Shown here: positions 18,001 to 64,000 of the stretch, piece after piece
How the letters are laid out: every line of letters begins with the position of its first letter
How positions within the stretch are numbered: position 1 is the stretch's first letter
Source of the DNA: Guillardia theta CCMP2712
Taxonomy: Eukaryota; Protista; Cryptophyta
DNA length: 64,000 nucleotides
Assembly (NCBI RefSeq): GCF_000315625.1
Contig: NW_005434634.1
Coordinates: 458,531 to 522,530, forward strand
Direction of reading: 5' to 3'
Position numbers and translations under genes: made by a program
The notes under the pieces: model-generated
Told to the model about the DNA's origin: nothing
Seen by the model: the letters and a program-made list of their open reading frames with translations, nothing else
The model's database searches: none

Positions 18001-21000
18001 AATTTATTGTCAGTATCTATGGGCTTTACTTTCAGAAAGATGTTCATCGTTGCATTTTTGGATGGAGCAATCCCACTGAAAGTGTTGTATTTTCATCTTC
18101 CCATATACAGTGCTCTGCATTAAAGTTGAATAATTCCAACGTTTCAGTATCTCTTGAAGTTTTTGGAGGAGGCATGCCTATACCTTATCGGAAACTTGTT
18201 TATTTTCACAACCATCCAAGAATTTTGTATATTTTGCCTTCCCAGATCTTCGAGGACAGTCGCACATTAGTTTTCGTAGGTGTGAGGAACTTGCTGATGA
18301 GTGACAAATTGGTGTGTCGTTTTAACCATACTCAAACGTTTGGGACTTTGGTTTATTTGAACCAGATAAAGTGTTTGAGTCCTCGAGATTCTAATCATAA
18401 GATTTTACCTTTTACATTAGAAGTGTGTCGCCAGAACTCATCACTGATAGCGGTTGGCAAGTTTTACATTGAGATTGTCAAACCTCCTATGATTGAAAAA
18501 ATCATTCCTTCAAACGGGCCTCTGCACGGCGGCACAAGAATTCGAGTAATAGGTAGTCATTTCAGTGCAACGTCCAATTTAAAATGTTGTTTCGACCATC
18601 AGGAGACCTATCTTCAAACAATTTCATCCAATCTGGCTATTTGCCTGTCTCCTCAAGTGGCATCTCGTCAACGTTGTAATTTTAGGTTGTCTTTAGGATG
18701 TAAGGATGAAAATGAAAGACTTGGATCAGGCAATTTAAGTTTCGAATTCTTCAGTGAATTTGAAATGTTTTCTGTTTTGCCATCACGATTTTTCAATCAT
18801 CAATTTGATCAGTTAACTGTTTTTGGAAATGCATTTTCCAATCCGTTAAAGTTGAGATGTGCTTACAGCAATGGTATATATAGCGAATTAAACACTGTAT
18901 ATGTCTTGAGTTCAACGAAATTGCTGTGTAATACTCCGACAAGATTTCAAAATGGGAAGGTGCAGCTGGAAATTACTAGCAGATTAATAGTTTCAAGATC
19001 TCTAGGAATAGAATTGATTATTGAACAAGCAACGAAATTGACCGGGAACAGTGCTCAAGTCGTGAATATGTCTCTGTTCTCAAACGATTACAAAGTCGTT
19101 TTTACTCCTACATATCTATTTCTCAACAGGATATCAATCATAACTGTCCATGGTAGCAATTTCATGAAAGATTTTTCGTGTAAGATTGAAGGAGCAGGAT
19201 TTGTAAAGTCTGTTCTCTTGAGCAGCATGGATATTCTGTGCCGTGTATGGAAAACAGGATTCGGAAAGTCGAAACTTTGGCTAACCAGGGGTGATGATGA
19301 AATCATTGCAATGTCAAGTGTACACACCATTCATGCTCCCAGGATACGCACCGTTACTCCCACAATAGTAAAAGAAAATGAGCAAGCATTGATAACGATC
19401 CTAGGAAATGATTTTCCATACGTAGAAACATCTTGTCAAAACAAGTATGGAATCATGAATGCAATTCAAATCAATATTACCACCATGATATGCCCCGTAT
19501 TGTTTGGAGTGGCTGGAAATGACTACTTGACTATAATGTTTCCATCCTTGGGCCTCAAATTCAACTACACAACCCTCACTATTGCAGTTCCTGAATTCCA
19601 TTCATTGATTCCTTCTATCAGTACATCTCATACACAGCGTTTGACTCTTGTTGGGAATCATTTTCCAAATTTGGAAATTGACTGTCATTTTGGAGCTTTG
19701 AAAACAAAAGCGACATTCTCGTCTTCCTCGACCATTATTTGCGATTCTCCAAAGACGAAAAGCCACATGCCCATTTCAGTTAGTTTTATGGTCTCAGGAG
19801 AGATAACTCAGTTTAGGAGCAAGCTAAGATATTTGTACTTCGATTCAGACCATATCTTGAAGCTGAAACCAAAATCCTTTGACTGTCTTGTGGAGCAAAT
19901 CGTAACAATGATCGGCAACAATTTCCCGAACAATAAGTTGAAGGTAAAGTTTTCGAACGGAGACATAAGATATCCAAAATTTATGTCAAGCACAATGCTT
20001 CTAATGAATTCTCCCAGGTCCTCCTTTAAGAAATTGCGTGTATTTATCTCACTAGATGATGTAAATTGGATGATTGTCAACTCGACATTATTTTGTGCTC
20101 TGCCTCCGTTCATTTCTACCATTCTTCCAACATTCGTGACTTGGAATGTGAAATCTTTGACCTTAATTGGAAACAATTTTGACAAATCGTTTCCATCATT
20201 TTTCAATTTGGGTGCAAGGAAGGGTGTGGGAATATTCGTATCAACAAGCATGATGATTGCACCGATTTCTCATTTGGCAAGCGGCAATTACACAGTGCAG
20301 GTGAAATCAGATTTATCTGTTGGAAGTTTTCAACGTGATATCAAACTCATCGTTCAAAGAGAGCATTACCCCATGATGATTAAACCGTCTTGTGGAAGTT
20401 CAGATCAGGGTCATAGTTTGATAAATTTATATTTTAAAGATGGAGCCCAGAATATGTCAGCCGTCACAGGCATTTATGTTGCAAATCAAAAACTTGAGTA
20501 TCAAACTCACCGTGATTACATTCAGATCGTTTTGAAAGCTCGTGATGTAATTGAAGAAAAAGGTGATGTCTTACGTCTAAATGTCCTTTGTAATGATCAT
20601 AGCTTTTACCTTGAGTACAAGCATGTTCCAATCACGAGGGCATTCATTGCTCCCTCTGTCGGACCTACACAAGGAATGACAGCAATTCGAATTCTTTCGC
20701 CGCAAATCCGGAATTCTTCAAAATTCCATTGCATCTTTGACCAGAATTCATATGGTAGGCTTATTCAGTATGCTGATAACAGAGTCTATTGCATTTCTCC
20801 CTCATTCGTCGAGAAAAAGGTCAAACTTCGGATTGTATCTTTGTCCAATTGTGAATCCTTTGAAACCGAGTTCCGCTTCCTGCCTGCTCCTGAAATACAA
20901 TCAGTGAGATCTCAGGATGCAAATAGAGTCTATATTCGTCTGAATCACTCTTTTGATGAAGAAAACATATCCTGGACGGCAAGCATCGGAGGTAAAATTC

Positions 21001-24000
21001 AAGTTGCCCTCAGGCATTGGGATAAGCAAACTCTGATCGCTTCTATCCCCAAATTGTATCCTGGAAATCATTCTATTCGAATCAGTTACAACGATCAGCA
21101 ATATAGCATGGAAGCGGTGTCATTTTACGTTCCTGAATCAATCTTCTTGTTGAAAGTGAATCCATCGGCTGCAACTTTTTTGTCAAAAGTGCGTGTATAT
21201 TACAAGATGAAGCATAAATCTGAAAGTCTATTTTGTCATTTTGGACAATCCAAGCTGTACAGATCTCCTTTGTTGGTTGAATTTGGATTGTCTGGAGAGA
21301 AATACTTTTGCAAAGTTCCCATCTTGCACCTCAGACAAAATGTTTTGTTCCTCTGTGATTTGAATTGTCAGAAACAAAGCAATCATGTGAAATTTGAGTT
21401 CATAACAAAGCAAACTGACACGCAGCAATTGCTCATAATTCCTACCCTTGTCCATCTATTCAAAAGGACAGCTGTAACAATCCGGGGATCAAACTTCAAG
21501 AATGTCGAAAGTCATCTGATTGGCAGGCATGGAATTCATGGTCAACTGGAAACAAACTTGCTATCCATCAGCGAAGCTATCTGCTACTTGACACCGACGG
21601 AAAGGAACATGAGCATTGAAATAGTAGTTAACCATGCATACACTGCGCAACTACCTTTGTTCATTTCAAGAATACCGATCTTCATGGACCTGGAAATTTG
21701 GAATGATCACGAGAATCATACCTTCAAATGGTTGACAGTAAATGGCAAGTATCTAGAAACATTCATTCGAGGACGATGCATCTTTGCAACCGTTTACAAA
21801 ACAAGAATAACTTCCATTGCGAGCAATGGTAGCAGGCTTTCATGCCCGTTACCAACAGTCAGGTACCCTGCAAATTTGACCCTCAAAATTGAAACCGAAA
21901 CCCAGGAAGCAATTGAAACAGGGCTTGTACTCAGTACAGAACCAGTACAAATCATGCTGATTACGCCTTCTGCAGGCCCTATTCATGGACGTACTCTTTG
22001 TCGTATTCAAGTGTCAACAATGCTCTCGGCCAAGCAGTCTTTCCGCTGCTCCTTTGGAGTGAGTAAAGCTGAAGCCTCATTGTATGATAGAACAAGTGTT
22101 GTTTGTTACACTCCACGGGGTAGTGAAGGTCTGTACGATGTTCGGGTACTTAGTATCTTCGATACGGTGGTCGGCTTTTCTCGTCATGCCTATCGCTACT
22201 ATGAATCACCAGTCTTGTTAGCATTGCAACCCAGTGCTGGCTCGAGCATCTCTAAGTTTGTTCTGACCCTGGTTGGAAAGACGTTTCTGAGTCAGTCCAT
22301 CCTTCGGTTTTCTGGTTCGCGCGCAGTGCTCCGATCAACTGTTCTGTCTTCATCCCTCATGCTGGTTTTTGCGGAGCGATGTCATGAAACAGACACTAGG
22401 ATCGAAATTGCAGGTAACGGACAAGACTTTGAAACAATGTCGAGCACATTCTTGTGTGCACCGCCAATCCGCGTACAACATATACAACCGACTTTGGTTT
22501 CAAGAAATCCTCGCAGAATTTCCATTGTAGGAGAGCATTTTCCTACTAGGAGTGATCTAAGATGTCAGTTCGGTCTTCAACGAGCAACTCTGAGCTGGAT
22601 TTCATCTACGCTCATGATTTGCCTAGTCCCGAGTGAAATGTATGGAAATCTTTCGATGAGTGTGTACGACAGCAGAAGTGTTCGTATGACGAGGTATTTT
22701 CTTTTACTGGTGCAAAACCCTCCGTCAGTATTGTCCATCATTCCTTCCTTTGCGTCCTCGGCAAGGCCGTTAATGGTTGAAGTCCTTGGAATGAATATTC
22801 TCCCACATTCGTACTGCATCTTTGCAGCAGAGGAATATGGTACGATAAGTACCGAATCGAAGTTCGTCACAAGCTCACTTGTGCGTTGCTCGTCTCCAGA
22901 GGGGACAGAAGGAACTTTCAGCGTATGCTTACATAGCAAAGATCTTCCTATTGCCGTGTCGTCGAGCACATGTATGCCTTTTGTCAGCCATCGTCTGTAT
23001 GATCCGGAAATCGTTTCAATCTACCCAACCTCTTCACCAATATCTGGAGGCCGCATATTGACTGTTTCTGGAAACAATTTCTACCCTACGCAGTCAGTTT
23101 GCATGATTGATGATCAGATGGTCCATTCCAAAGTTTTGTCCATCTCAAAGATGGAGTGTGTTGTTCCTCCTCATGAACCGGGCCCTGTGAATCTGCTCGT
23201 CACATCTGGAGATCAAGATGGTACAACGAGTGAGCAAATCGTTTTCAACTATGAATTCGACCCAACTATAACGAGTGTCATCCCCATCACATCTTCTGGG
23301 GAATCTGGGGTAGTTTTGACAATCAAAGGATCCCACTTTGCTAACACCATCGAAGCAAGCTGCAGCTTAGGAGGCGTCCCGATGAAGAGTACATGGCTGT
23401 CAAGCTCACACGTCCAATGCTCCGTGGATTTTAGCATAGGAGCCGGTGTTTTCTCAGTCGAATACACGAATGATGGTCAAGCATTCACAAGTTTACAATC
23501 ATTGTATATTGGAACGAGGATCAAGATGACATCCATTGAACCATCAATGTCAACGACACGAGGTGGATACTCTGTGAAGGTTCGGGGGACCGGCTTGCTT
23601 CAAACTGTCGACATGAAGTGCATGTTCCAGGAAAATATTGGTTCAGTGGTGATGGAGGTACAGGAAAATGAGTTTGTATGTTATACACCTCCTTCAGAGA
23701 TCCCTGGGACTGTGAGACTTTCCTTGCTTTCAGATTCTGGTAAGAGAATTCAGAGCGATCTCCTATTCGAGTATATACCTGATCTCTTGGCTCATTCCCT
23801 CTTTCCATCGTCTGGGCCATCAACAAGCAGCAGTGAAGTAGCTGTCCGAGGGGAGTACCTGCCACTCAATGGATCTGTCAAGTGTGTCTTCGGTGGTCAA
23901 GATACCACGGGGCTGGTTATGACATCATCATATATGAGATGTATCACGCCAGTATCTAGACAGGTAGGAACCATACCTTTCTCCTTGAGGATAGGCAAGA

Positions 24001-27000
24001 TAGCCGTTGGGACTCCCCTAAAATATGAGTTTGTAGAGGCTCCACAGGTCTTTGGGATGATTCCCTCGCAGGGCCCAGCGGAAGGGGGCACCAGGGTACT
24101 GCTTTATGGGGCAGGCTTTGATGTGGGACAAGGAATACGCTGCAAGTTTGGGTTGGAAGACGAAAGCGAGTCAATGGCACAAATAAGCTCTTCAACGGCT
24201 CTTCATTGCATCTCGAGACCAGGAAAAGCACAGAACCTAACCATTGGGATTGGCAATAGCGTCATTGGCTTCACATTCACCAAAACTCCTTTCGAATTAC
24301 TTGAGGTGATGAGAATCTTTCGAGTGTATCCTACAAAGGTGCCTGTGAACAGAGATACACAGATCACCATCGAAGGTACTGGCTTTGGGCAATATGCTGC
24401 TTCATGGTGTTGTATTGAACATGGTCAAATGTTACAAGTGGCAATCATTTCGAGCATCAGATTGCTTTGCAATATTTCCTACAGAAAATCGGGTCACAAA
24501 TCACTATATCTTGTTGAGAGAGCCGGTATGAATTTCATTTGATTCACTTTACTCGTTTTGATTGAATGTACAGGTTGGAAGCTTCAAGAAGAATATGGCG
24601 ATGTTTCGAGTCCCTTATCATGGACTGAGGTAGGTGACTTTGATCTAAAGTTCTTACGTCGATTCGTTACCAAAATAGAATTTTCCGAGCGGTCGAACGT
24701 TGCACAAAATTGTTCAAGCGTGCATTGCAAGTTACCTGCAAATTTGCATCGGGTGGCTTATGACCTCAAAGATACAAAGAACTGCGAGAAAGGGTGTTTT
24801 CTTGACTCAAGGAACACATCGTATCTGATTGACATATTTCCGAATACAATCTTCTCTGGAACCTCGAATACAATACGTGCTTTTGGTCAATTCTCAGAAT
24901 CGGATTCATATCGATGTGAAATTTCACATCAGTCGATGATCGCCACAAAGATTTCCAAGGGAGAGATAGTATGTGAGATCTTACCCCTTGGGATGGGATT
25001 ACATGAATTCAAATTGATATCAGATACAAATGACATCCTCACAGCACAGATCAACTGTGTCCCTATGAACTTAGACATTACACCTTCACTTGGTCCTATA
25101 CTAGGAGGGACTCTCGTGAGAATAAGTAACCCGCTGGGCTTGAATATCTCTGATTTTAACGTAGCAGTGAAAGAATCAATGGTAAACTTCACCTCCAAGT
25201 CTGCATCTGAGCTATATTTCAAGATGCCTCCCAGCCTTGCTGGCAGCCTCAAAATATCTGTCAAATGGAAATTGGAAGAATTTTTAAAGATAAAATTCCT
25301 GGTTACCGAAATTCCAAAAATTACTGCCATCCTTCCTTCAGTTGCACAGGTCTCGAAAACACTAAAAATTTCATTAAAAGGACGAGGCTTCATTGCCAAT
25401 TCCACTTACGTCAAATTTGGAGTCGATTTGGCGGAGGAAGTTTCTGTGCTTTCCTCGTCGCTCCTGATGTGCAAATGTCCGCAGTCCCAACTCGAAGGTA
25501 AAGTATTACTGTCAATCAGTACGAATGACCTGGATTACTTCTCTTATGATGTATCATTTACATTCATGCCTATGCCAAGAATATTCTCGGTGTTTCCTAC
25601 GTGTATACCGCCTTCAGGAGGAGTCGAAATATCAATATACGGAACGAATTTCTACGCACATGGGTTAGATTTAAGTGTGTTGATCGGAAGACAAGAAAGT
25701 TTTGCAAATCTGATTACTAGTACCATGCTTACGAGCGTTTGCCCAGTTTTGAATGAGTTTGCAAACCTCTCAGTCACATTGAGTGTTGGAGACGCCATGA
25801 TCGAAGGAGAAAGGGAGCCGTTACATGTCTGTAATGAGTTGAGCTTGTTGCGGGTTGTGCCAACGATCAGCTACGTGGGCAATCAGGTGCTTCTCACACT
25901 CTATGGCACAGGCTTCCGCGCGAAAATGCTCATACTTGCTGGGAAACGAAGACTGGATTGCGCAGTGAATGATCCTCAATCTGCAGATTGCCGAATCGAC
26001 GCTCTTCCAGTAGGCAACATATCTCTCCATATTTTGGGATCAGGCACAGAGCCAATTCAGTATAGAATTCTTGAGCGACCAACGGTGTACGCTGTTCATC
26101 CTACGGGGGTCTCGAGCACAGAATCCAGAGCGATTACTATATTTGGTCAAGGTTTTACTGAGCATATACGGGAGATTGGACTTCCTGGATGCAAAATGTC
26201 AGAGACTGATGCACTTTTGTTTTCTCTCTACAGCTCAACAATGCTTACATGTCAGTCAATATCATTTTCAAACTTTTTTGCGTGTATATTAGATCTGCCT
26301 TACGCAGATCGTATGCATCAATCGGGTACTTATGCTGTTCATTTCATAGCACCAACAATAGCATTTCCTCACAGTCATATCCTTATCCACGTGGGTACAA
26401 GAAATCCGGATCGTGCCATTGGAAATTGTCGATTTGGTTTGAAGCACTCAGTGTCTATTATTTACAAGAATTCTTCACTGTTGCTCTGCAAAGTTCCAGA
26501 TATAATTCCTGGGAATTACACATTGTCGATCCAGTTACAATCATCACTTTTCGAGTGGCAATATTCCTTTCATTTATATATAACAAAGGAGCCAAATATA
26601 TTTTCCATAATGCCATCCATATCAAGCACTTGTGGCGAAAGGACAATATCGATTTTAGGTTCTGCTTTCAATCAGCACATCCCCTTTTACTGCATGCTCC
26701 ATTCTCCCCACAAAGTGAGTATTGAGAGCCATTGGTTGTCTTCTTCAATTTTGACGTGCCTACTTCCAAGTGGTAGTGAGGGAAGGTTAAAGCTACAGAT
26801 CGTATCAGCTCAGTTACAAAAATCTTATAAAACGCTGACACATACCTGTATTCAATGCCGTGTTGAACATATTCTGATTCAGTCTCCGACCAAAATGATT
26901 GTTCAAGGTCACTTTCCTGCTGGATTTGAATACCATTGTGAGATGAATGAAATCCAAGTGAGAACTTATTGCAACGAAAGAGAGCTAATCTGCATGATAC

Positions 27001-30000
27001 CATCTCAATTCAACAAAAAAGGCGTCACTATTCTGAAAGTGAAAATCGGAAAAAATACTATTTGTTATGAAAACCAAACACAATTTCACACAGCGAGATT
27101 GATTCAAAGCAATCTGCAAGGATCCATTAAGAAATTTTCAAAAGCAACTCAACACTTCATATTGGAAAACGAAATTCTCGAAATCCTTCCCTCTACAGGC
27201 CCTATTCATGGACGTACTCTTTGTCGTATTCAAGTGTCAACAATGCTCTCGGCCAAGCAGTCTTTCCGCTGCTCCTTTGGAGTGAGTAAAGCTGAAGCCT
27301 CATTGTATGATAGAACAAGTGTTGTTTGTTACACTCCACGGGGTAGTGAAGGTCTGTACGATGTTCGGGTACTTAGTATCTTCGATACGGTGGTCGGCTT
27401 TTCTCGTCATGCCTATCGCTACTATGAATCNNNNNNNNNNNNNNNNNNNNNNNNNNNNNNNNNNNNNNNNNNNNNNNNNNNNNNNNNNNNNNNNNNNNNN
27501 NNNNNNNNNNNNNNNNNNNNNNNNNNNNNNNNNNNNNNNNNNNNNNNNNNNNNNNNNNNNNNNNNNNNNNNNNNNNNNNNNNNNNNNNNNNNNNNNNNNN
27601 NNNNNNNNNNNNNNNNNNNNNNNNNNNNNNNNNNNNNNNNNNNNNNNNNNNNNNNNNNNNNNNNNNNNNNNNNNNNNNNNNNNNNNNNNNNNNNNNNNNN
27701 NNNNNNNNNNNNNNNNNNNNNNNNNNNNNNNNNNNNNNNNNNNNNNNNNNNNNNNNNNNNNNNNNNNNNNNNNNNNNNNNNNNNNNNNNNNNNNNNNNNN
27801 NNNNNNNNNNNNNNNNNNNNNNNNNNNNNNNNNNNNNNNNNNNNNNNNNNNNNNNNNNNNNNNNNNNNNNNNNNNNNNNNNNNNNNNNNNNNNNNNNNNN
27901 NNNNNNNNNNNNNNNNNNNNNNNNNNNNNNNNNNNNNNNNNNNNNNNNNNNNNNNNNNNNNNNNNNNNNNNNNNNNNNNNNNNNNNNNNNNNNNNNNNNN
28001 NNNNNNNNNNNNNNNNNNNNNNNNNNNNNNNNNNNNNNNNNNNNNNNNNNNNNNNNNNNNNNNNNNNNNNNNNNNNNNNNNNNNNNNNNNNNNNNNNNNN
28101 NNNNNNNNNNNNNNNNNNNNNNNNNNNNNNNNNNNNNNNNNNNNNNNNNNNNNNNNNNNNNNNNNNNNNNNNNNNNNNNNNNNNNNNNNNNNNNNNNNNN
28201 NNNNNNNNNNNNNNNNNNNNNNNNNNNNNNNNNNNNNNNNNNNNNNNNNNNNNNNNNNNNNNNNNNNNNNNNNNNNNNNNNNNNNNNNNNNNNNNNNNNN
28301 NNNNNNNNNCCTGTTTCCAGTTCTATTCTGGGGAATTCATAATCAACAAAACAATTTGCGTTGATGCTTTTGAAATACCATATTTGTTTTATCTATCTCC
28401 TAGCATTGGTTCCACCCTGGGGGGTTTCCCTGTTTCAGTCTTTGGGCGTCACTTACAAGAGCACAGCGATTGTTTTGTTGGAGATCAGAAGGCTTCCCAT
28501 GCAATGGATCTCTTCGCAAAATGTGGTTTGCTTTGTTCACTCTTCAACAGCAATTGGTGTCATTCCTTTCAGAATCTTCCCGAGAAATCTTCATGCGGAA
28601 TCGAACAAGCTGCCATTCGAATTCTATGATTCATCATACGTCTCTGCCATCACACCATCTCTAGTTACGACAGAATATCTTGGTACGATAACCCTTTTTG
28701 GTACAAAATTTGTCAGTAATCACGATTTCATGATAAATTTCGGGAACACTTCGCAAGTCAGAGGAACTCTGCAAACATCAACCATTGTGACATGCGTCAT
28801 GCCCAGATCCTTGCTTGCATCCAAATATTTGTTATACATCTCAATTGATGAAAGAATGGCCTCTAATCATAAAGTCTTCACAGTGAAAAACATTTTGCAA
28901 ATACAGGGTATATCACCTACAATCGGTTTCTCAAATGGGGGCACCATTGTTCGAGTGTTTGGGCACGGTTTTAGTAATAATGGCGTACTATCCTGCAAAT
29001 TCGGGAATTTTACAACAGTGTTGAATGTGCTTTCTGACAGTGCAGCAGAATGTGCAAGTCCTACGCACAAGAAAGCAGTTGTGATTTTTGTAGTGGTTGC
29101 AAGTCAACATCAAATTTCGAATATGCTTCATTTTCAATATGTAGATCCCTTTGTTCTCATCGATGTCCTTCCCATGAACACAATACCTCTGAAACAATAT
29201 CAATTCACGATGCTTGGAGAAAATTTTTTGAATGCTGAATTGTATTGCAGTTTTAAATTTAGTCAAAGGGTTCGAGCAAAAGTTGTTTCATCGAGTATGT
29301 TAATGTGTAATGCAATCGGGCCTATTGAATCATCAGAGGTGACTGTGTTCTTGAACGCGAATGATCGTTCCAATTCAAAGGAGCTTCGTTCAGTACACAA
29401 TCCAATCATGTCCAGTCTGAAACCTGCATCATATTCAAAACTTCCTTTGACAGTAACAATATCTGGAAAATTTTTCCATCAACATTGTCCTTTTGCAGCT
29501 CGCATTCAGTCCCGGCATCATTTTCTTGCTTCCACACTACACTCTTCATCCAAGTGTACGGTTCTGATTCCTCCAAGTTTTGATCGGAATGTCAACGTCA
29601 GCATTGTGATTGTTTGTGAAAATATTGAAGTCTCACAGAACTCTCTGATTCTGACCAGTCTTCGCGCATCTAAATTCAACCTCGTGCCAACGATTGGACT
29701 TGTGACTGGTGGTGAGATCGTTTCGTTTGTCAATACTCAATTGCATGTAAATGCCAACGAAGTACAATGTAGATTCGGAAATATTATGACTTCTGTCAGT
29801 TTGAGTCTGAATGGAACTCTGACCTGTATTACTCCCTCTCATCCTCCAGGTTTTTCCTCCGTCGCATTGCGCTTCGCTGATTTTGATGATTTTACTTTTC
29901 AGTCATCATTTTATTTCCACAAGTTGATCGAAGTCGATTTTCTGAGACCCTGCTTTGGTTTGATTGGTCTTCCGTTCACCCTCACTATACATGGAAGGTC

Positions 30001-57000: not shown

Positions 57001-60000
57001 AACGACTGCTGGCAGTTACATGGTTCGTGTACTGGTAAGCTCTGTTGAGATATCTGACAGCCCTTTTCATTTTTTGGTCGAACCTGGCGAACCTTTTCAA
57101 AACACCACATCAATCGACCTGCAGGAGGGCCAAGGATATCTCCTTGGGACAGCGGTTACCATTCTCATCACGATCCGAGACAAGTATTGGAATCTCAGGT
57201 CTACGAACTTTGATTCGGTTCGTCGACTAGAGAATAATGCATATGGAGACGATAAAATGATAGTTTTTCAGAACTACTTCACAACTGTTTGCAATGGATC
57301 GTCATGTATGAGAGTTTCTGGTACAGACTTTGTCTTCATGGACATGGACTCTCGCGGAACTAAGTACACTGTGTCCAAAGTGTCCTCGAGTGGGGAATAC
57401 TCATTATCATTCAGACCTAGTGGGGCCAATAGAAGTACTTTCAATCTTCTAATTTGCGATCGTCTATGTTGTGAAAATGAAACGAAATGCCCTGTTCTTG
57501 ATGTTTGTAAACAGAAAGGCGATTGTGAACAAGCATTTTGCTTTGTGGCTACAAGTCTTCAAAGTCGGATCCACCATCCCTGCAAGGGAATGAAAGACTC
57601 AAAAAATAATTACAGTCCATTTACCCTCTTCCCATTCACCACCTATGGGGGAACGAGAGCAGCAACTTCGATAGCCTTGGGAAGTGATATCATAAGTACG
57701 GGATCAACGCCATACATAATGCACACCGCAGGAAATCCAGTCACATTTACTATCAGAGCTATGGATGAATTTGGAGTCCAGGCAAGTTCAGGTGGTGATA
57801 AGTGGCTCATTACAATCGTTAGATATGATACAACTAGTGGAGATGCGATCTCAACCAACATTCTTTCCACCATTACTGACAATGGTAATGGACTGTATGA
57901 TTGCAAATATGTCATGACACTCTCTGGTCCATACTTTTTGGAAATCAAACATGCAGATATTGACAATCGAACTGGAATTGTAAGAGCTCCCATGCAAATC
58001 AAAAATAGTCCGTTCTTTAATCTGGTATCTCTTCCGAATTCCACGCAAGCTGATAAAAGTACATTGCAAATAGTTACCTTGTTCACATGTGGGATTTCAT
58101 CAACATTTCTCCTACAGACCTACGACACGTTTGACAACAAGCAGTTGTATGCTTCCACTTCTCTCCCACAAAGTATAAATAAATACAAAGATTACATCTC
58201 CGCTAGATTTGTTTTGGGCGAGGTGTTTGTGACAGCCTCAATCAAAAATTATCCGGTATGTGCTCCCAACCCCATTTTGAGCGCTGATATTCTTTGTACG
58301 CCATTTGTTTTGGAGGGATTAATCACAGTATCTGGAAATTATAAACTGATCATCGAGGTGAATATGCAAGTTATCTCTAAGATCGACTTTTCAATCCAAG
58401 TATCACCAGGATTACCAAACCCCCAATCCTTCTTGCTCAGCGGCACGGGCATACAGCAATCTGTAGCTGGTGTGATTTCTACATTTTCGCTGAGATTGTT
58501 AGATTCGTTTTCCAATCGTGTATTCATATCGGTGGCTGTAGCTTCAGCAAAAATTGTTGGATCCATCAATGGTGGGTCCTACTCTTGCTACCGGGCAGAT
58601 GACAGTCTCTGCGTAGACCCAACTCCAATCTCCACGTCACTGAGCATTTCTCCCTCACAGCCTGCAAACTTTCTGGAAACTGAGACAAAGTATAGTGATT
58701 GGATACTGACGTACAATTGTACTAGGGCAGGTAACCATTCGTTGCAAATGTGGTACGATAATGCAGGAATTTCTAATTCTCCATTTACACTAGAGGTGTT
58801 AAATAACGTAGTGGATTCGAAAATTTCATCAGTTATGCGATTTGAAACATCTGACATTCAGAGTGGATCTAATCAACATTTCTATGTGTACACCCGAGAT
58901 TTGTATGGAAATCTTGTAACAAACTTCTACGGCACATTCAGTGTTTTATTGTTTGGTCCATCTTCCATGACAGGGACCTTGTCATCCACTGCTGAATTTG
59001 GCATTTTTGGGTGTTCACTCACGCCAACTGTGAGTGGATCTTACCGTCTTACTGTGAAGCTGATTGATTCTCACATAAGCGGTAGTCCAATGAATTTGAC
59101 TGTGATTGCAGGAATGGCGAGTGCGCCTCGTTGTTCTATCGTAACCTCCCCAGGTGTTGGAACAGTGGGTATTGCATCCTCAATATATTTTCAGGCACAT
59201 GATTCCTACAACAATAAAATTTTGACGGGTGGAGACATATTTTTGGCTGAAATCACGGATCCTAAATTTGCACGTACGATCGTTGTGCCAGCCGATTTGA
59301 ACGATGGTATGTACAGACTGACCTTTGCCTCAAGTGTAACAGGACGACACAATGTTACCATCACTCTAGGAGGCTCGCATATATTTGGAAGTCCCTTAAG
59401 CATGCTGATCGACTCAGGAGCACTTGATTTGGGTCAAACGTTGATAGTATTTCGATCGACAACCGAAGCTGGAACTCCTCTTCGAATATCAGTCCTTCCA
59501 AGGGATGCTTATGCAAACGAGAAGTCTCAAGCAGATCTGATGCTTTACTTGCTTACACTTGTGACTTCGATTCAATTAGAATTCAATTCCAACGCAGTCT
59601 TCTATGAATATCCTGACAGCAAGTACTCGTACGACGGCTATGTCACATATACCCGCTCAGGACAGTATACCGTCCAATTAAAAGCACTTCAAGTCAATTC
59701 TGCCGGTATTTCAGAGATGCAGGAGTTGTCGAGTTCCCCGATTCTCATCACATGCAACCCATCTCTTCCAAATGAAACAAAATCGTTTGCTTTTGGGCAA
59801 GGAACCTCAAGGTACTGCATGCCAACTGTACCTGATGTTCTCTGACTTTTTTCCCAGGTTAATAGCAGGTCGAAATGGATCATTTACAATTGTTGCAAAA
59901 GATGAATACTCAAACAATCTTACACGAGGAGGTGACCCTTTCATTTTCTGGTTGATTTACACGAATCCAGTAATCCGAATGAATCAGACTGTCCATGACT

Positions 60001-63000
60001 TACAGAATGGGTTATATCAATCCTACTTTGTATTGACAGCAGCCGGAATCTACAATGTTGAAATTCGACTTGCAGGAAGTCATATTTCTGGGTCTCCATT
60101 CACTGTTCTTGTCGACCCAGCTTCAGTTGATCCATGGAAGACAATTCTCTATGGATCGGGTGTATATGGCGTATCCCTGGGGAAGGAATCCTACTTTGAT
60201 GTTCAATTGTCTGATGGATATGGAAATGCCGTCAAAGGCTCGAAAGGCGACGTAGAGACACTACTGGATGATTCAAAATCCATTTCCCTTCCCTCGTCTT
60301 CAGTTCAACCTAATGGCATGATTCGGTGTACATTCTCCGGCCTGATATTAGGCAACTATAGACTTTACATATATGTGTACAACATCAGTATCCCATCAAA
60401 TCCAATCTCAGGTCTGGTGGTCCTTGGTCCAGGAAATCCGAGCCCGGCTAATAGTATATTTACAGCTGGACAAACTTTCACGTTCACAGCAGGAATAGAA
60501 AAAATGTTCATTTTGGAACTGAGGGATTCCTTGGGCATCAAGATAGACAATGGAAATTACATATCTTCCATCTCGTTGGAGTTTGATGTATCTCCAGGAT
60601 ATTCTCTTCCACAACTGATCAAAGAGCCATTACCCAACGAAGATGGAACTTATAATATTTGGATTCCGTCTTCTTTGACTCGAGCAGGGGATTACCGACT
60701 GCGGGTATATATTTCAAACGGTGAGATGAATAGAAGCCCATTCAATTTGACCGTACTATCAACAGCAGCAGACGCACAAGCCTGTAGAGTGCGTCCTATG
60801 GCTCTTGGGGGTGTATACACCTTGTCCACAGCCGGGGTTACCGGTCAATTCCTGCTTGACATATTCGACAGTTTTGGGAACACAGTTCGCTACGATCCTA
60901 CGATAGATATAGGTCTGAAAGCCAAGATGATCGGTCCTGCACAAACCTTAATCAAAACGATCAACTTTTATTCAGGACTTTGGGAAATCGATTATGTCGG
61001 GACACGTAGCGGAGAGTATCAGATGGAAATAACGATTGCCGACTTGCATGTACGACAATCACCCTTCGTCATCACTGTGCAGCATGCGGAGATTAATCCA
61101 TCCAGTTCTTTGGTCAACCTGACTCAACTTCTCACAGCTGGGACGATGCATGTGTTCTCAATTCAAAGCAAGGACGCGTATGATAATGAGGTCGATACCA
61201 ATGGTGCACCCATTCTTGCTGTTTCTATAGCTGATCCGCAGTTCTTTTCTGTATCAGATATCTCTCGCATTCAGCCAACCAGCGCAACGGTCAAATATCG
61301 TGCACGGGGTCTTTATCAAGGAACGCTTACCATGACGAAAAGTGGTAGTTTCCTGTTCAATATTCAGTACAATTCAATACATTTACAAGGAAGCCCTTTT
61401 GGAATTACCGTGAACCCTTCACATATTGAAGGTGGTATGTGTGTTTCTATTGGCAGCGGGATACAAGCAGCAATCAGCGGCGAAATAGCCACCTTCACAA
61501 TACTTGCTTACGACCGCTTTAGCAACAAGTTCATCGCAGGAGGAGAGAAGTTTGAAAGCACTCTACGGCCATCCAATTGCATAGACCAGGGTTGTAATGT
61601 ATTAGATACTGTGAAAGTCTATGACCAAAATGATGGCTCTTACTTGGGTTTCTATCAGGCTGGGAACCCAGGTGAATATCTAATGACAATTCAAGTCAAC
61701 ATGAAGGGACTAAAGGGATCCCCCTACCGCATCCAGATTGGAAGCCCGTACCCACCAATTCCATCGGTATCATGGATGTCAGGAACAGGAGGGGAAATCG
61801 AGGTTGAATTTGACATTGCAACTGACATGGGGGGAATTTCTGGCTCTGTCACATGTGACTTTTTCTTTCAAAAAATTACCTCAGACAAGTTTGGGACAGA
61901 CTGTACTTCATTTTGGTCAACACCAAGAACTTTGATGGTGCGCCTGGGGGCAGGTGCCACGATCCTTCCGGGAAATGACTTGAATCTTGCATCGGACCGA
62001 ATCAGAAATAAAAGACAAACTTCATATTTTACCAGTGGCAGTGTGAGATTACAGGCGCCATTGCAGCCGTTGACACCCATACTAATCATTGATGGGCCCT
62101 CGTTTATTAGCTCATGTGATATTCTTGTACTCGACGCGAGGATGTCTCAGGGGGGGGGGGGGAGAAATCTGAATTTTCAATGGGGAATCATTCCAGGTGG
62201 AGATATTGAACAATTGTTAATGGCATCTATACAGGAGCAGAACATAAACGTCCTATGCCCTGATTGGGTCGATCCGTTGTCTAAGAGCATCTGTCAAGCA
62301 CCTATCCTACAACTTGATCCGAAAATAATGGCTGACGGTGGTGAATATACCTTTTTGCTTACTGCCACAAATTTTTTCGATCAAATATCAACAGTACAGC
62401 ACAGAGTCACCAAGGTGCCCAATGATGGAATGCCAATACTTTCGATCCAAGGTGAATCCACCCTCAGTGTAAACCCAGACGAAGACAATACAATCCGTTT
62501 ATCTGTACAGTCATCAAGCTGCGGCAGCAATAATCTATCCTTTGCATGGACTCTTGTTTCTGCTTCAGGTATAGTTCTGCTCAAGAATATAGATCTGAAT
62601 CAAAGGAGACTTTTCATCCCCAAGAATTCTCTTCAAGGAGGATCACAGTACACATTTATGGCGGAACTGAGCAGTCACCAATTCAATGAAACTATGACTA
62701 CAAATACAACAATTCTGATAATCACGTCCGAGATATCTGCGATTGCTGCCATTTCTGGTGGAAGTCGTACATCATCTGTTGCAGATTTGAGCACTTTTTC
62801 TCTACAACTATTTGGAAACATAGCCTACGAATCAGTTTCAAGAATTGAATGGTATTGCGAGCCATCACCGTGCTTCTTAGATGTCTACAACAGTATTTCT
62901 GTAGATGGACGAACATTTGCAATAGCACCCTTTTCGATTCTACCAGGCTTGTACAGACTGATTGCAGCCGTGACAATGCAGCAGGGAAGTATCTCGGTGC

Positions 63001-64000
63001 GTTTCTCCGCTGCTGCTAATGTCTTTGTGATCCCTTCAAGTCTGTCTGCCGTTTCCATATTCTCATCGGCCATGAAATTCAACTCCAAGCAAACCGTGAA
63101 TCTGATTGGCTCCCCTCAGAGCTACATTGACAAGACATTAAATTACGAATGGTTTCAGTCTCGTGGAGGACAGAATTTGCTTAGTGACAAAATCACAAGT
63201 ATTTCAAGCAGATTTTCGGATACACTTGGTTTTGCCAAAAATGCCTTGATGGAGGGTATGCAATATCGATACCGGCTCGAAGTTTGGAATCAAAATGGAT
63301 TTGGATTTGCTGAGATCGACATTGCTGTAAGCAAGGCGCCCTCAGGAGGAACTTTTGAAGTGAATCCATCGAAAGGGTTTGCTGTTGATACTAATTTTGA
63401 ATTAAGTGTGTCGCGTTGGACAGACTCTCCAGAGAATCTGCCGTTGTCATATCTTTTCAGCTATGTGTTAGATGTTGAAGATAGCACAAGTACAGCCGTC
63501 CCTTTCATCTACACCGACAAACCTTTTCAAAATGTGAGGATTCCGAATACAAACAAAGCAGTGCGCAATTCTTCCTTGATAGTACAGATTTTTAATATGG
63601 CTCATAGCGGAACAACTATCAACAGAACAGTCGAACTGAAAACGCCTCTAGATCCTTTTAGTTCAGCTGCAACCCTCCGCTCCCTGATTGAAATTTCTTC
63701 ATTGGCTCAAGATTTTGATAGCTTGATCATTCTGTCTTCGTGCTTAAGCAGTTTGCTAGAGACTTCATTAAGTCCTACGAGAAGAGACCAATCTACATTT
63801 TTCTGTCCAAACGATGGGACAAGTTGTGATAATGACGAGATCAGGAGCTTTCTCTTCCAGAAGGTGAAATCTTCATTGCAATACATCAAACCTGTTGCAG
63901 ACGAAATATCTATGCTTGCCAATTCGATTCAGAAAACGACCACTGCTCGGATGAATCGTACAAGTCAGATGCTGAGTTTATTGCTAACACAACAAGTCAT
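1..64000 (+). CDS. Giant extracellular multidomain protein, partial at both ends (>21,000 aa): IPT/TIG array - TMEM132-like/cohesin - RCC1-like propeller - dockerin - filamin-type Ig array - REJ (polycystin-1/REJ-like surface protein)
   Basis: Coding sequence is continuous on the + strand with no intergenic space. At every ORF junction the repeat motif carries on in register across a canonical short intron, an N gap or a 1-nt frame break. No credible start or terminal stop in the window. Paired Cys and N-x-S/T sequons are abundant throughout. Confidence 0.85.
3..585 (+). CDS. Coding segment 1 (IPT/TIG repeats; 5'-partial, crosses N gap 41-153)
   Basis: Positions 3-40 translate as CFGLSFISSTIL. 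The same frame after the gap (from 156) gives ESIQPSSVDVGGQLVTLVGKGFSRDREYECDFG...VECRAPAHRPGNVSL...ITPSFGPSRGGSRVTVTGYGF, which are typical IPT repeats. The frame switches to that of ORF 499 near 585 (approximate). Confidence 0.8.
41..153. other. Assembly gap (113 N)
   Basis: Run of N. Confidence 1.
586..6430 (+). CDS. Coding segment 2 (IPT/TIG repeats; bulk of ORF 499..6489)
   Basis: Recurring ~85-90 aa units PSxGPxxGG..(V/I)T(I/V)xGxxF...CxFG...SSxxxxCxxP, e.g. PSSGPAEGGNMVTIHGNAF and PSQGPIDGGQEVTITGDN. Both ends are approximate frame-break positions. Confidence 0.85.
6428..6570 (+). CDS. Short bridging coding segment in a shifted frame (IPT repeat end and start)
   Basis: The frame starting at 6428 reads RIGTCMFCLNLHGNYSLAIAEGSTGLSNRIMTSILAFPEFFEVAPKSI. 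It contains the GNYSL motif of the other repeats and joins SQIGGTLTVFGAN at 6571. Confidence 0.7.
6571..11793 (+). CDS. Coding segment 3 (IPT/TIG repeats; ORF 6589..11841)
   Basis: IPT motifs throughout (PSFGYDFGGATITLRGRGY, PSFGPSSGSTTVSLVGGYF, SVSNNGVDFS). Ends ...GARATIRG, then continues FQNMLPNTF in the frame of ORF 11802. Confidence 0.85.
10875..11074 (+). repeat. Direct repeat A, copy 1 (200 bp; copy 2 at 17102-17301)
   Basis: Sequences match from GGTGTCAAACAATGGG to CTAGCAGAAT. I saw one difference, synonymous (CTG/TTG Leu). Confidence 0.95.
11793..24525 (+). CDS. Coding segment 4 (IPT/TIG repeats; ORF 11802..24542 up to the splice donor)
   Basis: About 4,240 open codons of IPT repeats (PSNGPLHGGTRIRVIGSHF, PSQGPAEGGTRVLLYGAGF). 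The ORF stop at 24540-24542 lies inside the predicted intron. Confidence 0.9.
17102..17301 (+). repeat. Direct repeat A, copy 2
   Basis: Matches 10875-11074; both encode VSNNGVDFSPSTLKFVYTAQPKF...GGRDSTLAE. Confidence 0.95.
21973..22207 (+). repeat. Direct repeat B, copy 1 (at least 235 bp; copy 2 at 27196-27430 is cut by the gap)
   Basis: Matches from CAGGCCCTATTCATGGACG to CTACTATGAATC; encodes GPIHGRTLCRIQVST...HAYRYYE. Confidence 0.95.
23752..24149 (+). repeat. Direct repeat C, copy 1 (398 bp; copy 2 at 32202-32599)
   Basis: Matches from AGAGCGATCTCC to CTGCAAGTTT at offset 8450; encodes SDLLFEYIPD...GQGIRCKF. Confidence 0.95.
24526..24573 (+). other. Spliceosomal intron, 48 nt, GT-AG, phase 1
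   Basis: G|GTATGA donor, AT/T-rich body, TGTACAG|G acceptor. It contains the in-frame TGA. Removal joins the two ORFs in frame as ...VERAG-WKLQEE. Confidence 0.85.
24574..27430 (+). CDS. Coding segment 5 (linker plus IPT/TIG repeats, runs into the N gap)
   Basis: Open frame of ORF 24558 with IPT motifs (PSLGPILGGTLVRI, PPSGGVEISIYGTNF, PSTGPIHGRTL) up to the gap. Confidence 0.85.
25407..26211 (+). repeat. Direct repeat D, copy 1 (805 bp; copy 2 at 33197-34001)
   Basis: Matches from TACGTCAAATTTGGAGTC at offset 7790. The only differences I saw are three substitutions in the last ~50 bp. Confidence 0.95.
27196..27430 (+). repeat. Direct repeat B, copy 2 (runs into the N gap)
   Basis: Matches 21973-22207 up to the first N. 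Confidence 0.95.
27431..28309. other. Assembly gap (879 N), next to repeat B copy 2
   Basis: Run of N that starts inside a near-identical duplication. Confidence 1.
28312..28491 (+). CDS. Coding segment 6 (IPT repeat right after the gap)
   Basis: Reads ...EIPYLFYLSPSIGSTLGGFPVSVFGRHLQEHSDCFVGDQK. After one extra G (28492) it continues as LPMQWISSQNVVC in the frame of ORF 28361. Confidence 0.8.
28493..59811 (+). CDS. Coding segment 7: 31.3-kb uninterrupted reading frame (IPT repeats, central mosaic, filamin-type repeats)
   Basis: ORF 28361..59845 of the track, trimmed to the in-register start and to the splice donor at 59812; about 10,440 codons without a stop. Confidence 0.92.
32202..32599 (+). 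repeat. Direct repeat C, copy 2
   Basis: Matches 23752-24149; no differences seen by eye. Confidence 0.95.
33197..34001 (+). repeat. Direct repeat D, copy 2
   Basis: Matches 25407-26211; encodes YVKFGVDLAEEV...LPGCKMSE. Confidence 0.95.
40000..43100 (+). other. TMEM132-like ectodomain (N-terminal conserved region, cohesin-like domain, tandem BIG/Ig domains)
   Basis: Ordered motifs GCNIIIEKQWF; LFNIPALAG; LKCESTDPSV; SCDLILTGNEYAGSKDLKLLVTF; VPFVVWFP; IRSIKGF; YETAKVR. They parallel TMEM132 motifs as I recall them (LPxxWF; LNTAxLTG; CxSxDEDV; CDYxFVxGKE; TVWxP; LxQIKGW; YQxAxVR). Confidence 0.7.
43103..43565 (+). other. Cohesin-like domain
   Basis: KDFVEVPVYF...FGAILIDVVFDTQQLKFES...HVVDLKMI fits the cohesin pattern GxxVxVPV...xxxxxxYDxxxLxF. 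Confidence 0.6.
43640..44395 (+). repeat. Seven RCC1/BLIP-II-like (crinkly-type) repeats; predicted 7-bladed beta-propeller
   Basis: Seven ~37-aa units: VCGIIIDGTGVCWN, VCGITVMKQLICWN, FCAIANQGIVECWN, QCGIDNKRFLSCIS, LCAINNQAMIVCWV, FTAILRNGSAFLF, SCGILTNASAICWN. Confidence 0.8.
44534..44785 (+). other. Dockerin-like domain (two EF-hand-like Ca-binding loops)
   Basis: RGNVNADCKITALDLEFLLWFIHG and MDMDMDGFITIRDSELLASTLIG match the duplicated dockerin pattern GDxNxDGxIxxxDxxxLxxxxxG, with a Cys-rich spacer between them. Confidence 0.7.
45326..45622 (+). other. SRCR (scavenger receptor Cys-rich)-like domain
   Basis: IKL...CLVQLSRNDTWTTVCPINFD....LICKSL...LSCNGTESYISDC...C....FAC follows the SRCR consensus VEV...WGTVCDDxF...VxCRxLG...CxGxExxLxxC. 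Confidence 0.75.
55109..55450 (+). other. EGF/laminin-EGF-like repeats (two full, one partial)
   Basis: CFGHGQC...CQCQDGFDGSNCNICSPNWYGPDC; CGGRGFC...CNCGKNFIGAKCEGCAPGFYGTGC; CGGRGYCNKNGDC. Confidence 0.9.
59812..59857 (+). other. Spliceosomal intron, 46 nt, GT-AG, phase 2
   Basis: AG|GTACTG donor, branch-like CTGAC at 59842-59846, polypyrimidine TTTTTTCCCAG|G acceptor. Splicing restores a complete filamin repeat: AFGQGTSR-LIAGRNGSFTIVAKDEYSN. Confidence 0.93.
59858..64000 (+). CDS. Exon missed by the ORF track (open to window end): 6 filamin-type repeats, pre-REJ domain, REJ module, helical region
   Basis: I translated the frame from 59859 by hand and found no stop up to 64000 (~1,380 codons). 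It includes HISGSPFTVLV, EIEVEFDIATD, LVLDARMSQGGGGRNLNFQW and KAPSGGTFEVNPSKGFAVDTNFELSVSRWTDSPENLPLSYLFSY. Confidence 0.9.
62060..63640 (+). other. REJ (receptor for egg jelly / polycystin-1 family) module
   Basis: LVLDARMS..GRNLNFQW; LFIPKNSLQGGSQYTF; LNYEWFQ...KNALMEGMQYRYRLEV; and the hallmark PSGGTFEVNPSKGFAVDTNFELSVSRWTDSPENLPLSYLFSY (~63335-63465). Confidence 0.85.
62150..62162 (+). repeat. G13 homopolymer inside coding sequence (CAG GGG GGG GGG GGG AGA = QGGGGR)
   Basis: 13 consecutive G; the reading frame is preserved. Confidence 0.9.

Follow-up and report, generated by a model that had tools for sequence, protein, structure and literature searches.

The 64,000-nucleotide (nt) stretch of Guillardia theta CCMP2712 DNA analyzed here (the window; C40:458531-522530, where C40 is contig NW_005434634.1) carries on its plus strand a chain of huge open frames, at 499-6489, 6589-11841, 11802-24542, 24558-28364, and 28361-59845, followed after a short intron by an exon that begins at 59858 and runs off the end of the window. 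Positions are given in window numbering unless C40 is named, and amino acid (aa) numbers count from the start of this exon. We are confident that its product joins six filamin-type repeats, a pre-REJ block, a REJ module, a GAIN domain, a GPS-type motif with two cysteines, and five transmembrane (TM) helices, in that order (Table 1).

Gene Structure and the Terminal Exon

The intron opens with GT at 59812-13 and closes with AG at 59856-57, the latter preceded by a pyrimidine run; if the 10,494-codon open reading frame (ORF) at 28361-59845 is read unspliced, its stop falls inside the intron. The exon starts with the third base of the split AGG codon. From 59859 its frame is free of stops to 64000, the two other frames meeting stops within 15 codons, and it closes at a TAA at C40:525109-525111 (window-equivalent 66579-66581), 2.58 kb beyond the window, which leaves 2,240 codons open in DNA of ~42-45% G+C. 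The frame is missing from the list of ORFs supplied with the stretch because that list omits those running off the window.

As a check on the splice, the two exons were compared separately with a metagenomic homolog, P0003, whose frame is uninterrupted at the junction. The end of the upstream exon corresponds to P0003 residues 1-510, residue 511 matches the split codon, and the alignment of the downstream exon begins with its third codon, at residue 514; across the junction the two are collinear, with no residue gained or lost. A transcriptome-derived protein of Hanusia phi is 80% identical to the exon over 2,025 residues and ends in the same C-terminal residues; this model is truncated and starts at an internal Met equivalent to aa 216. 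With the terminal exon included, the open frames sum to ~22,000 codons, and we conclude that the exon at 59858 is probably the last one of a single giant gene that takes up the entire window on the plus strand. That it is instead no part of this gene, but a separate gene that could begin at an internal Met in the manner of the truncated Hanusia model, the product of a mis-called splice, or a decaying pseudogene, is very improbable in view of the exact collinearity with P0003, the first filamin repeat, which straddles the intron and is completed from the upstream exon, the 2,240 open codons at that G+C, the identity to an expressed Hanusia transcript, and the same giant-plus-REJ layout in relatives.

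Within 499-59845, the junctions between the open frames resemble short introns. In the DNA past the window, a 33-nt candidate intron at L002:3040-3072 (numbering in which L002:3271 is C40:525271) was rejected, as it preserves the frame and the Hanusia protein has the residues in question.

Filamin Repeats, Pre-REJ Block, and REJ Module

Pfam matches the Filamin family (PF00630) to five stretches of the exon with an expectation value (E) of 3e-43, and SPF-type motifs mark the ends of the six repeats at aa 79, 181, 293, 401, 512, and 621. The GEX2-type immunoglobulin (Ig) family PF23616 scores 66-71 bits over ordinary filamin repeats of the exon, and structures of gelation factor and filamin-A in the Protein Data Bank (PDB) match a profile of the whole family at E 1e-15 to 5e-14. 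The block that follows the repeats matches no Pfam family. Its AlphaFold2 (AF2) model is a beta sandwich with a predicted local distance difference test (pLDDT) score of 80-91, for which the structural search gave generic Ig- and fibronectin type III (FN3)-like neighbors only.

The REJ family (PF02010) matches the exon at 78 bits, against a cutoff of 25, with E 7e-22 over profile positions 165-416. The Pfam-matched part comprises aa 920-1264 (window 62616-63650), and the genome-wide scan described below places its match at C40:521599-522183. In the AF2 model, REJ is a chain of beta sandwiches, which agrees with descriptions of this module as fibronectin-like folds (PMC9672506, PMC1934368). Foldseek, run on the AF2 model of the pre-REJ block and REJ, returned nothing more specific than Ig/FN3/cadherin-like chains; this model is of low confidence in its C-terminal third.

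These results bear on an earlier note on the stretch, which had been made from its letters alone and had proposed a 46-nt intron followed by an open frame to 64000, six more filamin repeats, a pre-REJ domain, and a REJ module to be sought by Pfam. The intron is borne out by its GT-AG ends, the unspliced stop, and the collinearity with P0003; the repeats are recovered through their six ends and PF00630, the pre-REJ domain as a beta sandwich conserved in all seven homologs compared, and REJ through its PF02010 score. The proposal that the REJ module identifies the protein family is fair, but this family is large in G. theta, whose genome holds at least 35 REJ loci.

GAIN Domain and GPS Motif

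To the C-terminal side of REJ, we modeled aa 1251-1660 with AF2 from an alignment of eight sequences (mean pLDDT 65.5; predicted template modeling score 0.68). The model passes from seven helices through a beta sandwich into a TM helix. In the PDB, the best nine Foldseek matches are all GAIN domains of adhesion G protein-coupled receptors (GPCRs) with E 6e-9 to 1e-4, headed by BAI3 (4dlo_A; E 6e-9) and continuing with latrophilin, BAI2, CELSR1, GPR126, GPR110, and CD97. VIA-align gave Z scores of 13.8-17.4 for eight GAIN structures, compared with 11 or less for unrelated helical designs. Based on these structural matches, the Leu/Ser-rich segment at 63640-64000 is therefore the likely start of GAIN subdomain A, and the model indicates a GAIN domain with a GPS-type motif immediately before TM1.

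The motif sits 670 nt beyond the window end and reads, in order, Cys, then Tyr-Trp-Asp, and later Cys-x-Val-x-His-Met-Thr-Asp-Phe. The exon is homologous to paralogs elsewhere in the genome across the GPS, TM1, the following loop, TM2, and TM3 (E 4e-28 for the paralog on C8), and the paralogs on C8, C58, and C37 pass the Pfam GPS threshold with the canonical pattern W..W..GC..CxCxHLTDF. All 10 relatives compared, which show 31-83% identity and include Hanusia phi, Baffinella frigidus, and a Hemiselmis transcript, retain the core H-[L/M]-T-[D/E]-F; it takes the form His-Met-Thr in the exon protein and Hanusia, and His-Leu-Thr in Baffinella, Hemiselmis, and two metagenomic relatives. When the model is aligned to cleaved latrophilin (4dlq_A), its last aligned residue, 356 (Met1606), pairs with latrophilin residue 837, the Leu that immediately precedes the scissile bond (PMC3321182). 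Judged by its sequence, the exon carries a degenerate two-Cys variant of the GPS, with one canonical disulfide predicted to be kept and HMT in place of HLT.

The model of aa 1251-1660 also matched chains of the axonemal 96-nm repeat from human, bovine, Chlamydomonas, and Leishmania sources (8j07_k3, 9fqr_Hn, 8glv_AE, and 9y6s_9K), with Foldseek E 1e-4 to 1e-3 and VIA Z 10.6-12.2.

Membrane Segments and Likeness to Polycystin-1

TM segments were located by hydropathy, and topology was assigned from flanking charges. Net positive charge alternates between the sides of the five segments, and hydropathy and charge together suggest an N-out, C-in topology. The TM1-TM2 loop of 85 aa is strongly conserved, helical-looking by eye, and not a PLAT domain; its placement suggests that it is cytoplasmic and occupies the position of PLAT in polycystin-1. 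The topology likewise suggests that the ~360-aa TM3-TM4 loop is cytoplasmic. Blocks within this longer loop are strongly conserved among relatives at 31-83% identity: a basic run, first His- and then Arg-rich, follows TM3, a poly-Pro stretch ends in Asn-Pro-Arg-Pro, and a Leu-rich helix precedes TM4. In sequence, these blocks resemble sites at which SH3-, WW-, or profilin-type partners could dock.

A TM1-TM3 profile built from the exon protein, three paralogs, and two orthologs was searched against 177,635 PDB sequences. The top three matches are all human polycystin-1 (6a70_B, 8z6f_A, and 8z6b_A; E 0.004), the next match being at E 0.47, and the region aligned is the TM2-TM3 pair with its FTRxQR, right after PLAT. 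We assign the TM2-TM3 pair as homologous to TM2-TM3 of polycystin-1 with moderate confidence. Two results weigh against this assignment: the match is short (~80 residues) and reaches only E 0.004, which amounts to moderate support, and a TM4-TM5 profile found no polycystin-1 match in the PDB. In other PDB searches, phmmer gave no match for aa 701-2240 at E up to 1, and the profile of the whole family gave only filamin matches and a weak match to the ADGRF1 GPS (E 0.09).

A Pfam search of the exon to E 10 gave no PLAT match (PF01477), and PKD_channel and Ion_trans were not matched either. Since PLAT and a channel-like six-TM half were not found, the protein is polycystin-1-like only in its REJ-GAIN-TM1-3 core. 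No seven-TM family appeared in the Pfam scan of the whole exon, the PDB profile searches did not match the TM region of any adhesion GPCR, and because of this lack of a seven-TM domain we do not regard the protein as an adhesion GPCR.

Much of what the earlier note had expected past the window is present. The Leu/Ser-rich segment, which it described as helical-looking, coincides with the opening helices of GAIN subdomain A in the AF2, Foldseek, and VIA results, and the predicted GPS and membrane segments follow REJ within a few kb, hydropathy finding five of the latter. By contrast, the PLAT and PKD channel domains for which it proposed a search are both absent from the exon by Pfam. Two outcomes that it had held to speak against its reading were looked for, namely an exon that gives no REJ match and an ORF that ends without a GPS or TM anchor, and neither was found.

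Table 1. Features of the terminal exon and of the adjoining DNA (window numbering unless C40 is named; aa, exon residue numbers; TM and GAIN boundaries are predictions)
Feature	Position	Strand	Details
Intron	59812-59857	+	46 nt, GT-AG, phase 2, split codon AG/G
Six filamin/ABP280-type Ig repeats	59858-61745	+	aa 1-629; Pfam PF00630 and repeat-end motifs
Pre-REJ beta sandwich, two conserved Cys	61746-62063	+	aa 630-735; kept in 7/7 homologs
REJ module	62064-63644	+	aa 736-1262; about five repeated beta-sandwich units
GAIN start (helical subdomain A)	63642-64000, on to ~C40:522714	+	AF2, Foldseek, VIA
GAIN subdomain B	C40:522736-523233	+	
GPS-type motif	aa 1574-1609	+	Cys1574 to Cys1601; His-Met-Thr at C40:523201-523209 (window-equivalent 64671-64679)
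TM1	aa 1640-1660		starts ~30-33 residues (~100 nt) after the GPS site
TM2	aa 1749-1770		
TM3	aa 1779-1800		
TM3-TM4 loop	aa 1800-2160, C40:523786-524868		~360 aa, Arg/Pro/Ser-rich, conserved poly-Pro and basic motifs
TM4	aa 2166-2190		
TM5	aa 2200-2224		
CAAX-protease-family gene, convergent	C40:525271-526617 (window-equivalent 66741-68087)	-	449 codons
Polycystin-type channel ORF, stand-alone	C40:528701-529924	+	408 codons, 3.6 kb past the giant gene's stop

Proposed Mechanism and Self-Cleavage

The terminal exon encodes the part of the ectodomain nearest the membrane, together with its anchor. In the mechanism proposed here, the GAIN domain would cut itself between Met1606 and Thr1607, and the giant N-terminal fragment would then be held non-covalently on a fragment made of the stalk and the five TM helices. 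A pull or a ligand acting on the adhesive ectodomain could release or shift the N-terminal fragment, with the signal passed on via the membrane stub and the proline-rich cytoplasmic loop. Release or rearrangement driven by force or ligand has been proposed for polycystin-1 and for adhesion GPCRs (PMC9672506). Whether the domain does cut itself we put at even chances or marginally better.

Several observations weigh against self-cleavage. The motif scores 13-14 bits with Pfam GPS, below the cutoff of 22.5. Compared with the GPS of the paralogs, the second Trp is lost, Leu is replaced by Met at the residue before the cut (P-1), and Cys 2 and 4 are lost together, with Cys 1 and 3 kept. The lost pair is exactly one of the two latrophilin disulfides (C820-C834; PMC3321182), and according to Arac et al. 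both GPS disulfides help to hold the scissile turn in place (PMC3321182). In our model, the strand after the cut site has pLDDT <50, from an alignment of only eight sequences. Several animal GAIN domains do not undergo cleavage.

These points converge on the main rival to cleavage, in which the same architecture holds and the GAIN domain serves as a structural stalk that does not cleave; the protein would remain one covalent chain, a giant adhesin anchored in the membrane, and H-M-T-D-F would be kept for the folding of the last beta strand only. The loss of one disulfide, the Trp to Tyr and Leu to Met replacements, the sub-threshold Pfam score, the role described for both disulfides (PMC3321182), and the low confidence of the strand past the site all speak for such a stalk, and the best structural matches include the BAI2 and BAI3 GAIN structures, both of the uncleaved form. 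On the other hand, His, Thr, and Phe are invariant and P-1 is only ever Leu or Met in the 10 relatives, with neighboring positions varying; GPS motifs are described with 2-4 cysteines (PMC9672506); and Met is a conservative replacement for a residue that fills a hydrophobic pocket. On balance we give the non-cleaving stalk somewhat less than an even chance.

Comparison with Known Systems

The PKD1/REJ family is characterized by REJ, GPS, and PLAT with 1-11 TM segments (Gunaratne 2007), and in the sea-urchin SpREJ proteins the number of TM helices ranges from 0 to 11 and half lack PLAT (PMC1934368). In its predicted domains, the giant protein has the REJ and the GAIN/GPS of this family, shares TM2-TM3 with polycystin-1, and lacks PLAT and the channel half. 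As in the polycystin-1/REJ family, REJ is followed directly by GAIN/GPS and then by TM1; as in polycystin-1 itself, the TM2-TM3 hairpin bears the FTRxxR signature and the ectodomain is large and modular. The differences from polycystin-1 are several: the conserved 85-aa loop stands after TM1 instead of PLAT, there are five TM segments only, with no TOP domain and no channel-like TM6-11, a 360-aa Pro/Arg-rich loop separates TM3 from TM4, and the GPS is HMT with two Cys. Its ectodomain, ~5 times longer than that of human polycystin-1, consists of filamin-type repeats, not PKD repeats, lectin domains, or leucine-rich repeats.

Adhesion GPCRs (latrophilin, BAI, CELSR, and GPR126; 4DLQ, 4DLO, 8VY2, and 6V55) resemble the giant protein in having GAIN subdomains A and B (Z 17), a GPS ~30 residues before the first TM segment, and the logic of an adhesive N-terminal fragment on a tethered stalk. 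In contrast to them, the giant protein has five TM segments and no seven-TM secretin-type bundle, and its REJ before GAIN is the polycystin arrangement. The paralogs on C8, C58, C37, and C1 likewise have a GPS ~0.8-0.9 kb after REJ and a homologous TM1-loop-TM2-TM3 block, but they keep a four-Cys HLT GPS, unlike the two-Cys motif of the giant.

Outside animals, the brown-algal male-gamete protein Esi0130_0068 of Ectocarpus also joins REJ, GPS, and multiple TM segments (PMC4700764); it differs from the giant protein in its size of 1,427 aa, its 6-7 TM segments, and a reported match to the polycystin channel, and it has no filamin array or giant ectodomain. GAIN domains have been reported in ciliates and Dictyostelium (PMC3321182). 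Given the 0-11 TM segments of SpREJ proteins, the REJ-GPS combination in a brown alga, and GAIN domains in ciliates and Dictyostelium, we therefore consider the giant protein a new architectural variant and not a new kind. Its filamin/GEX2-type Ig repeats in an extracellular array are shared with gamete surface proteins of the GEX2 type (PF23616). GEX2 is a single-pass protein and is not known to carry REJ or GAIN.

Polycystin-Related Genes in the Genome and Downstream of the Giant Gene

We scanned the genome (87.1 Mb in 669 contigs) and found 50 REJ matches at roughly 35-40 loci, 70 PKD_channel matches, 8 strong GPS matches, and 7 PLAT matches. Not one of the 50 REJ matches has a PLAT match next to it, and the PKD_channel matches all fall outside the REJ loci. 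At the level of these domain matches, REJ-GAIN receptors and polycystin channels are always separate genes in this genome, and the PLAT link of animal PKD1 is absent.

The gene next to the giant is convergent, with its stop ~160 nt from that of the giant gene, and its product has a C-terminal Rce1-like/CPBP CAAX-protease domain (PF02517, E 9e-18). Beyond it lies the polycystin-type channel ORF, which matches PKD_channel at E 2e-19 and Ion_trans at E 3e-9; in short open frames just downstream of the giant gene, Pfam found nothing. A continuation of the giant gene into the channel ORF was rejected on account of the stop, the identical C-terminus in Hanusia, and the convergent CAAX-protease gene in between.

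The two genes could nevertheless form a split polycystin, in which the REJ-GAIN-5TM giant and the channel encoded 3.6 kb downstream would pair and rebuild a 5 + 6 TM sensor-channel complex of the polycystin-1/polycystin-2 type. The channel ORF is indeed on the same strand, the giant carries exactly the polycystin-1 part without the channel half, and pairing between polycystin-1-like and polycystin-2-like proteins is known (PMC9672506). Such a pairing is nonetheless improbable: the CAAX-protease gene intervenes, only 1 of ~38 REJ loci has a channel within 10 kb, compared with ~0.4 cases expected by chance from at least 60 PKD_channel loci, and there is no channel in the 2.5-3.5 kb, a short range, downstream of homologs on three metagenomic contigs. 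The proximity of the channel is within what chance would give, and because of this, the intervening gene, and the channel-free flanks of the homologs, it is not taken as evidence for a partnership.

Significance

The predicted exon product shows how this giant cryptophyte surface protein would be attached to the cell, by a polycystin-type REJ-GAIN unit on a five-helix anchor in which helices 2 and 3 resemble those of polycystin-1. It also would put the receptor core of polycystin-1 in a lineage remote from animals, with neither PLAT nor channel, and bears on how 11-TM polycystins were assembled and on what a REJ-GAIN unit does alone. The natural two-Cys His-Met-Thr GPS offers a test case for the sequence requirements of GAIN autoproteolysis. 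This value is tempered by the number of REJ-GAIN proteins in the genome.

More speculatively, cryptophytes may have the N-terminal half of polycystin-1, comprising REJ, GAIN/GPS, and the initial TM segments with the FTRxxR TM2-TM3 hairpin, as a free-standing module that lacks PLAT and a channel half and is used here as the cleavable anchor of a ~22,000-residue adhesin. We regard this broader proposal as tentative and, taken as a whole, unlikely. If it is true, no other ectodomain known to be carried by a GAIN domain would come near this one in size, and the arrangement would be compatible with 11-TM polycystin-1 having arisen when such a receptor fused with a polycystin-2-type channel; polycystin-2-type channels are stand-alone genes here, one of them a near neighbor of the giant.

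Relatives of the Giant Protein

Close relatives were found only in cryptophytes and on metagenomic contigs. One metagenomic relative has the same layout, with ORFs of 9,038, then 639, and then 1,687 codons, the last bearing REJ. In another metagenomic homolog, P0004 (L009:4875-12197), the genes called upstream of the REJ-bearing gene have no filamin matches; this ortholog may therefore be ~2,300 residues long, and the N-terminal extension of the giant may be lineage-specific. The TM4-TM5 block of P0004 lies in a separate exon (11505-12053). The ESM Atlas returned nothing but GPS-bearing haptophyte clusters, at 0.91, and we note them as a lead only.

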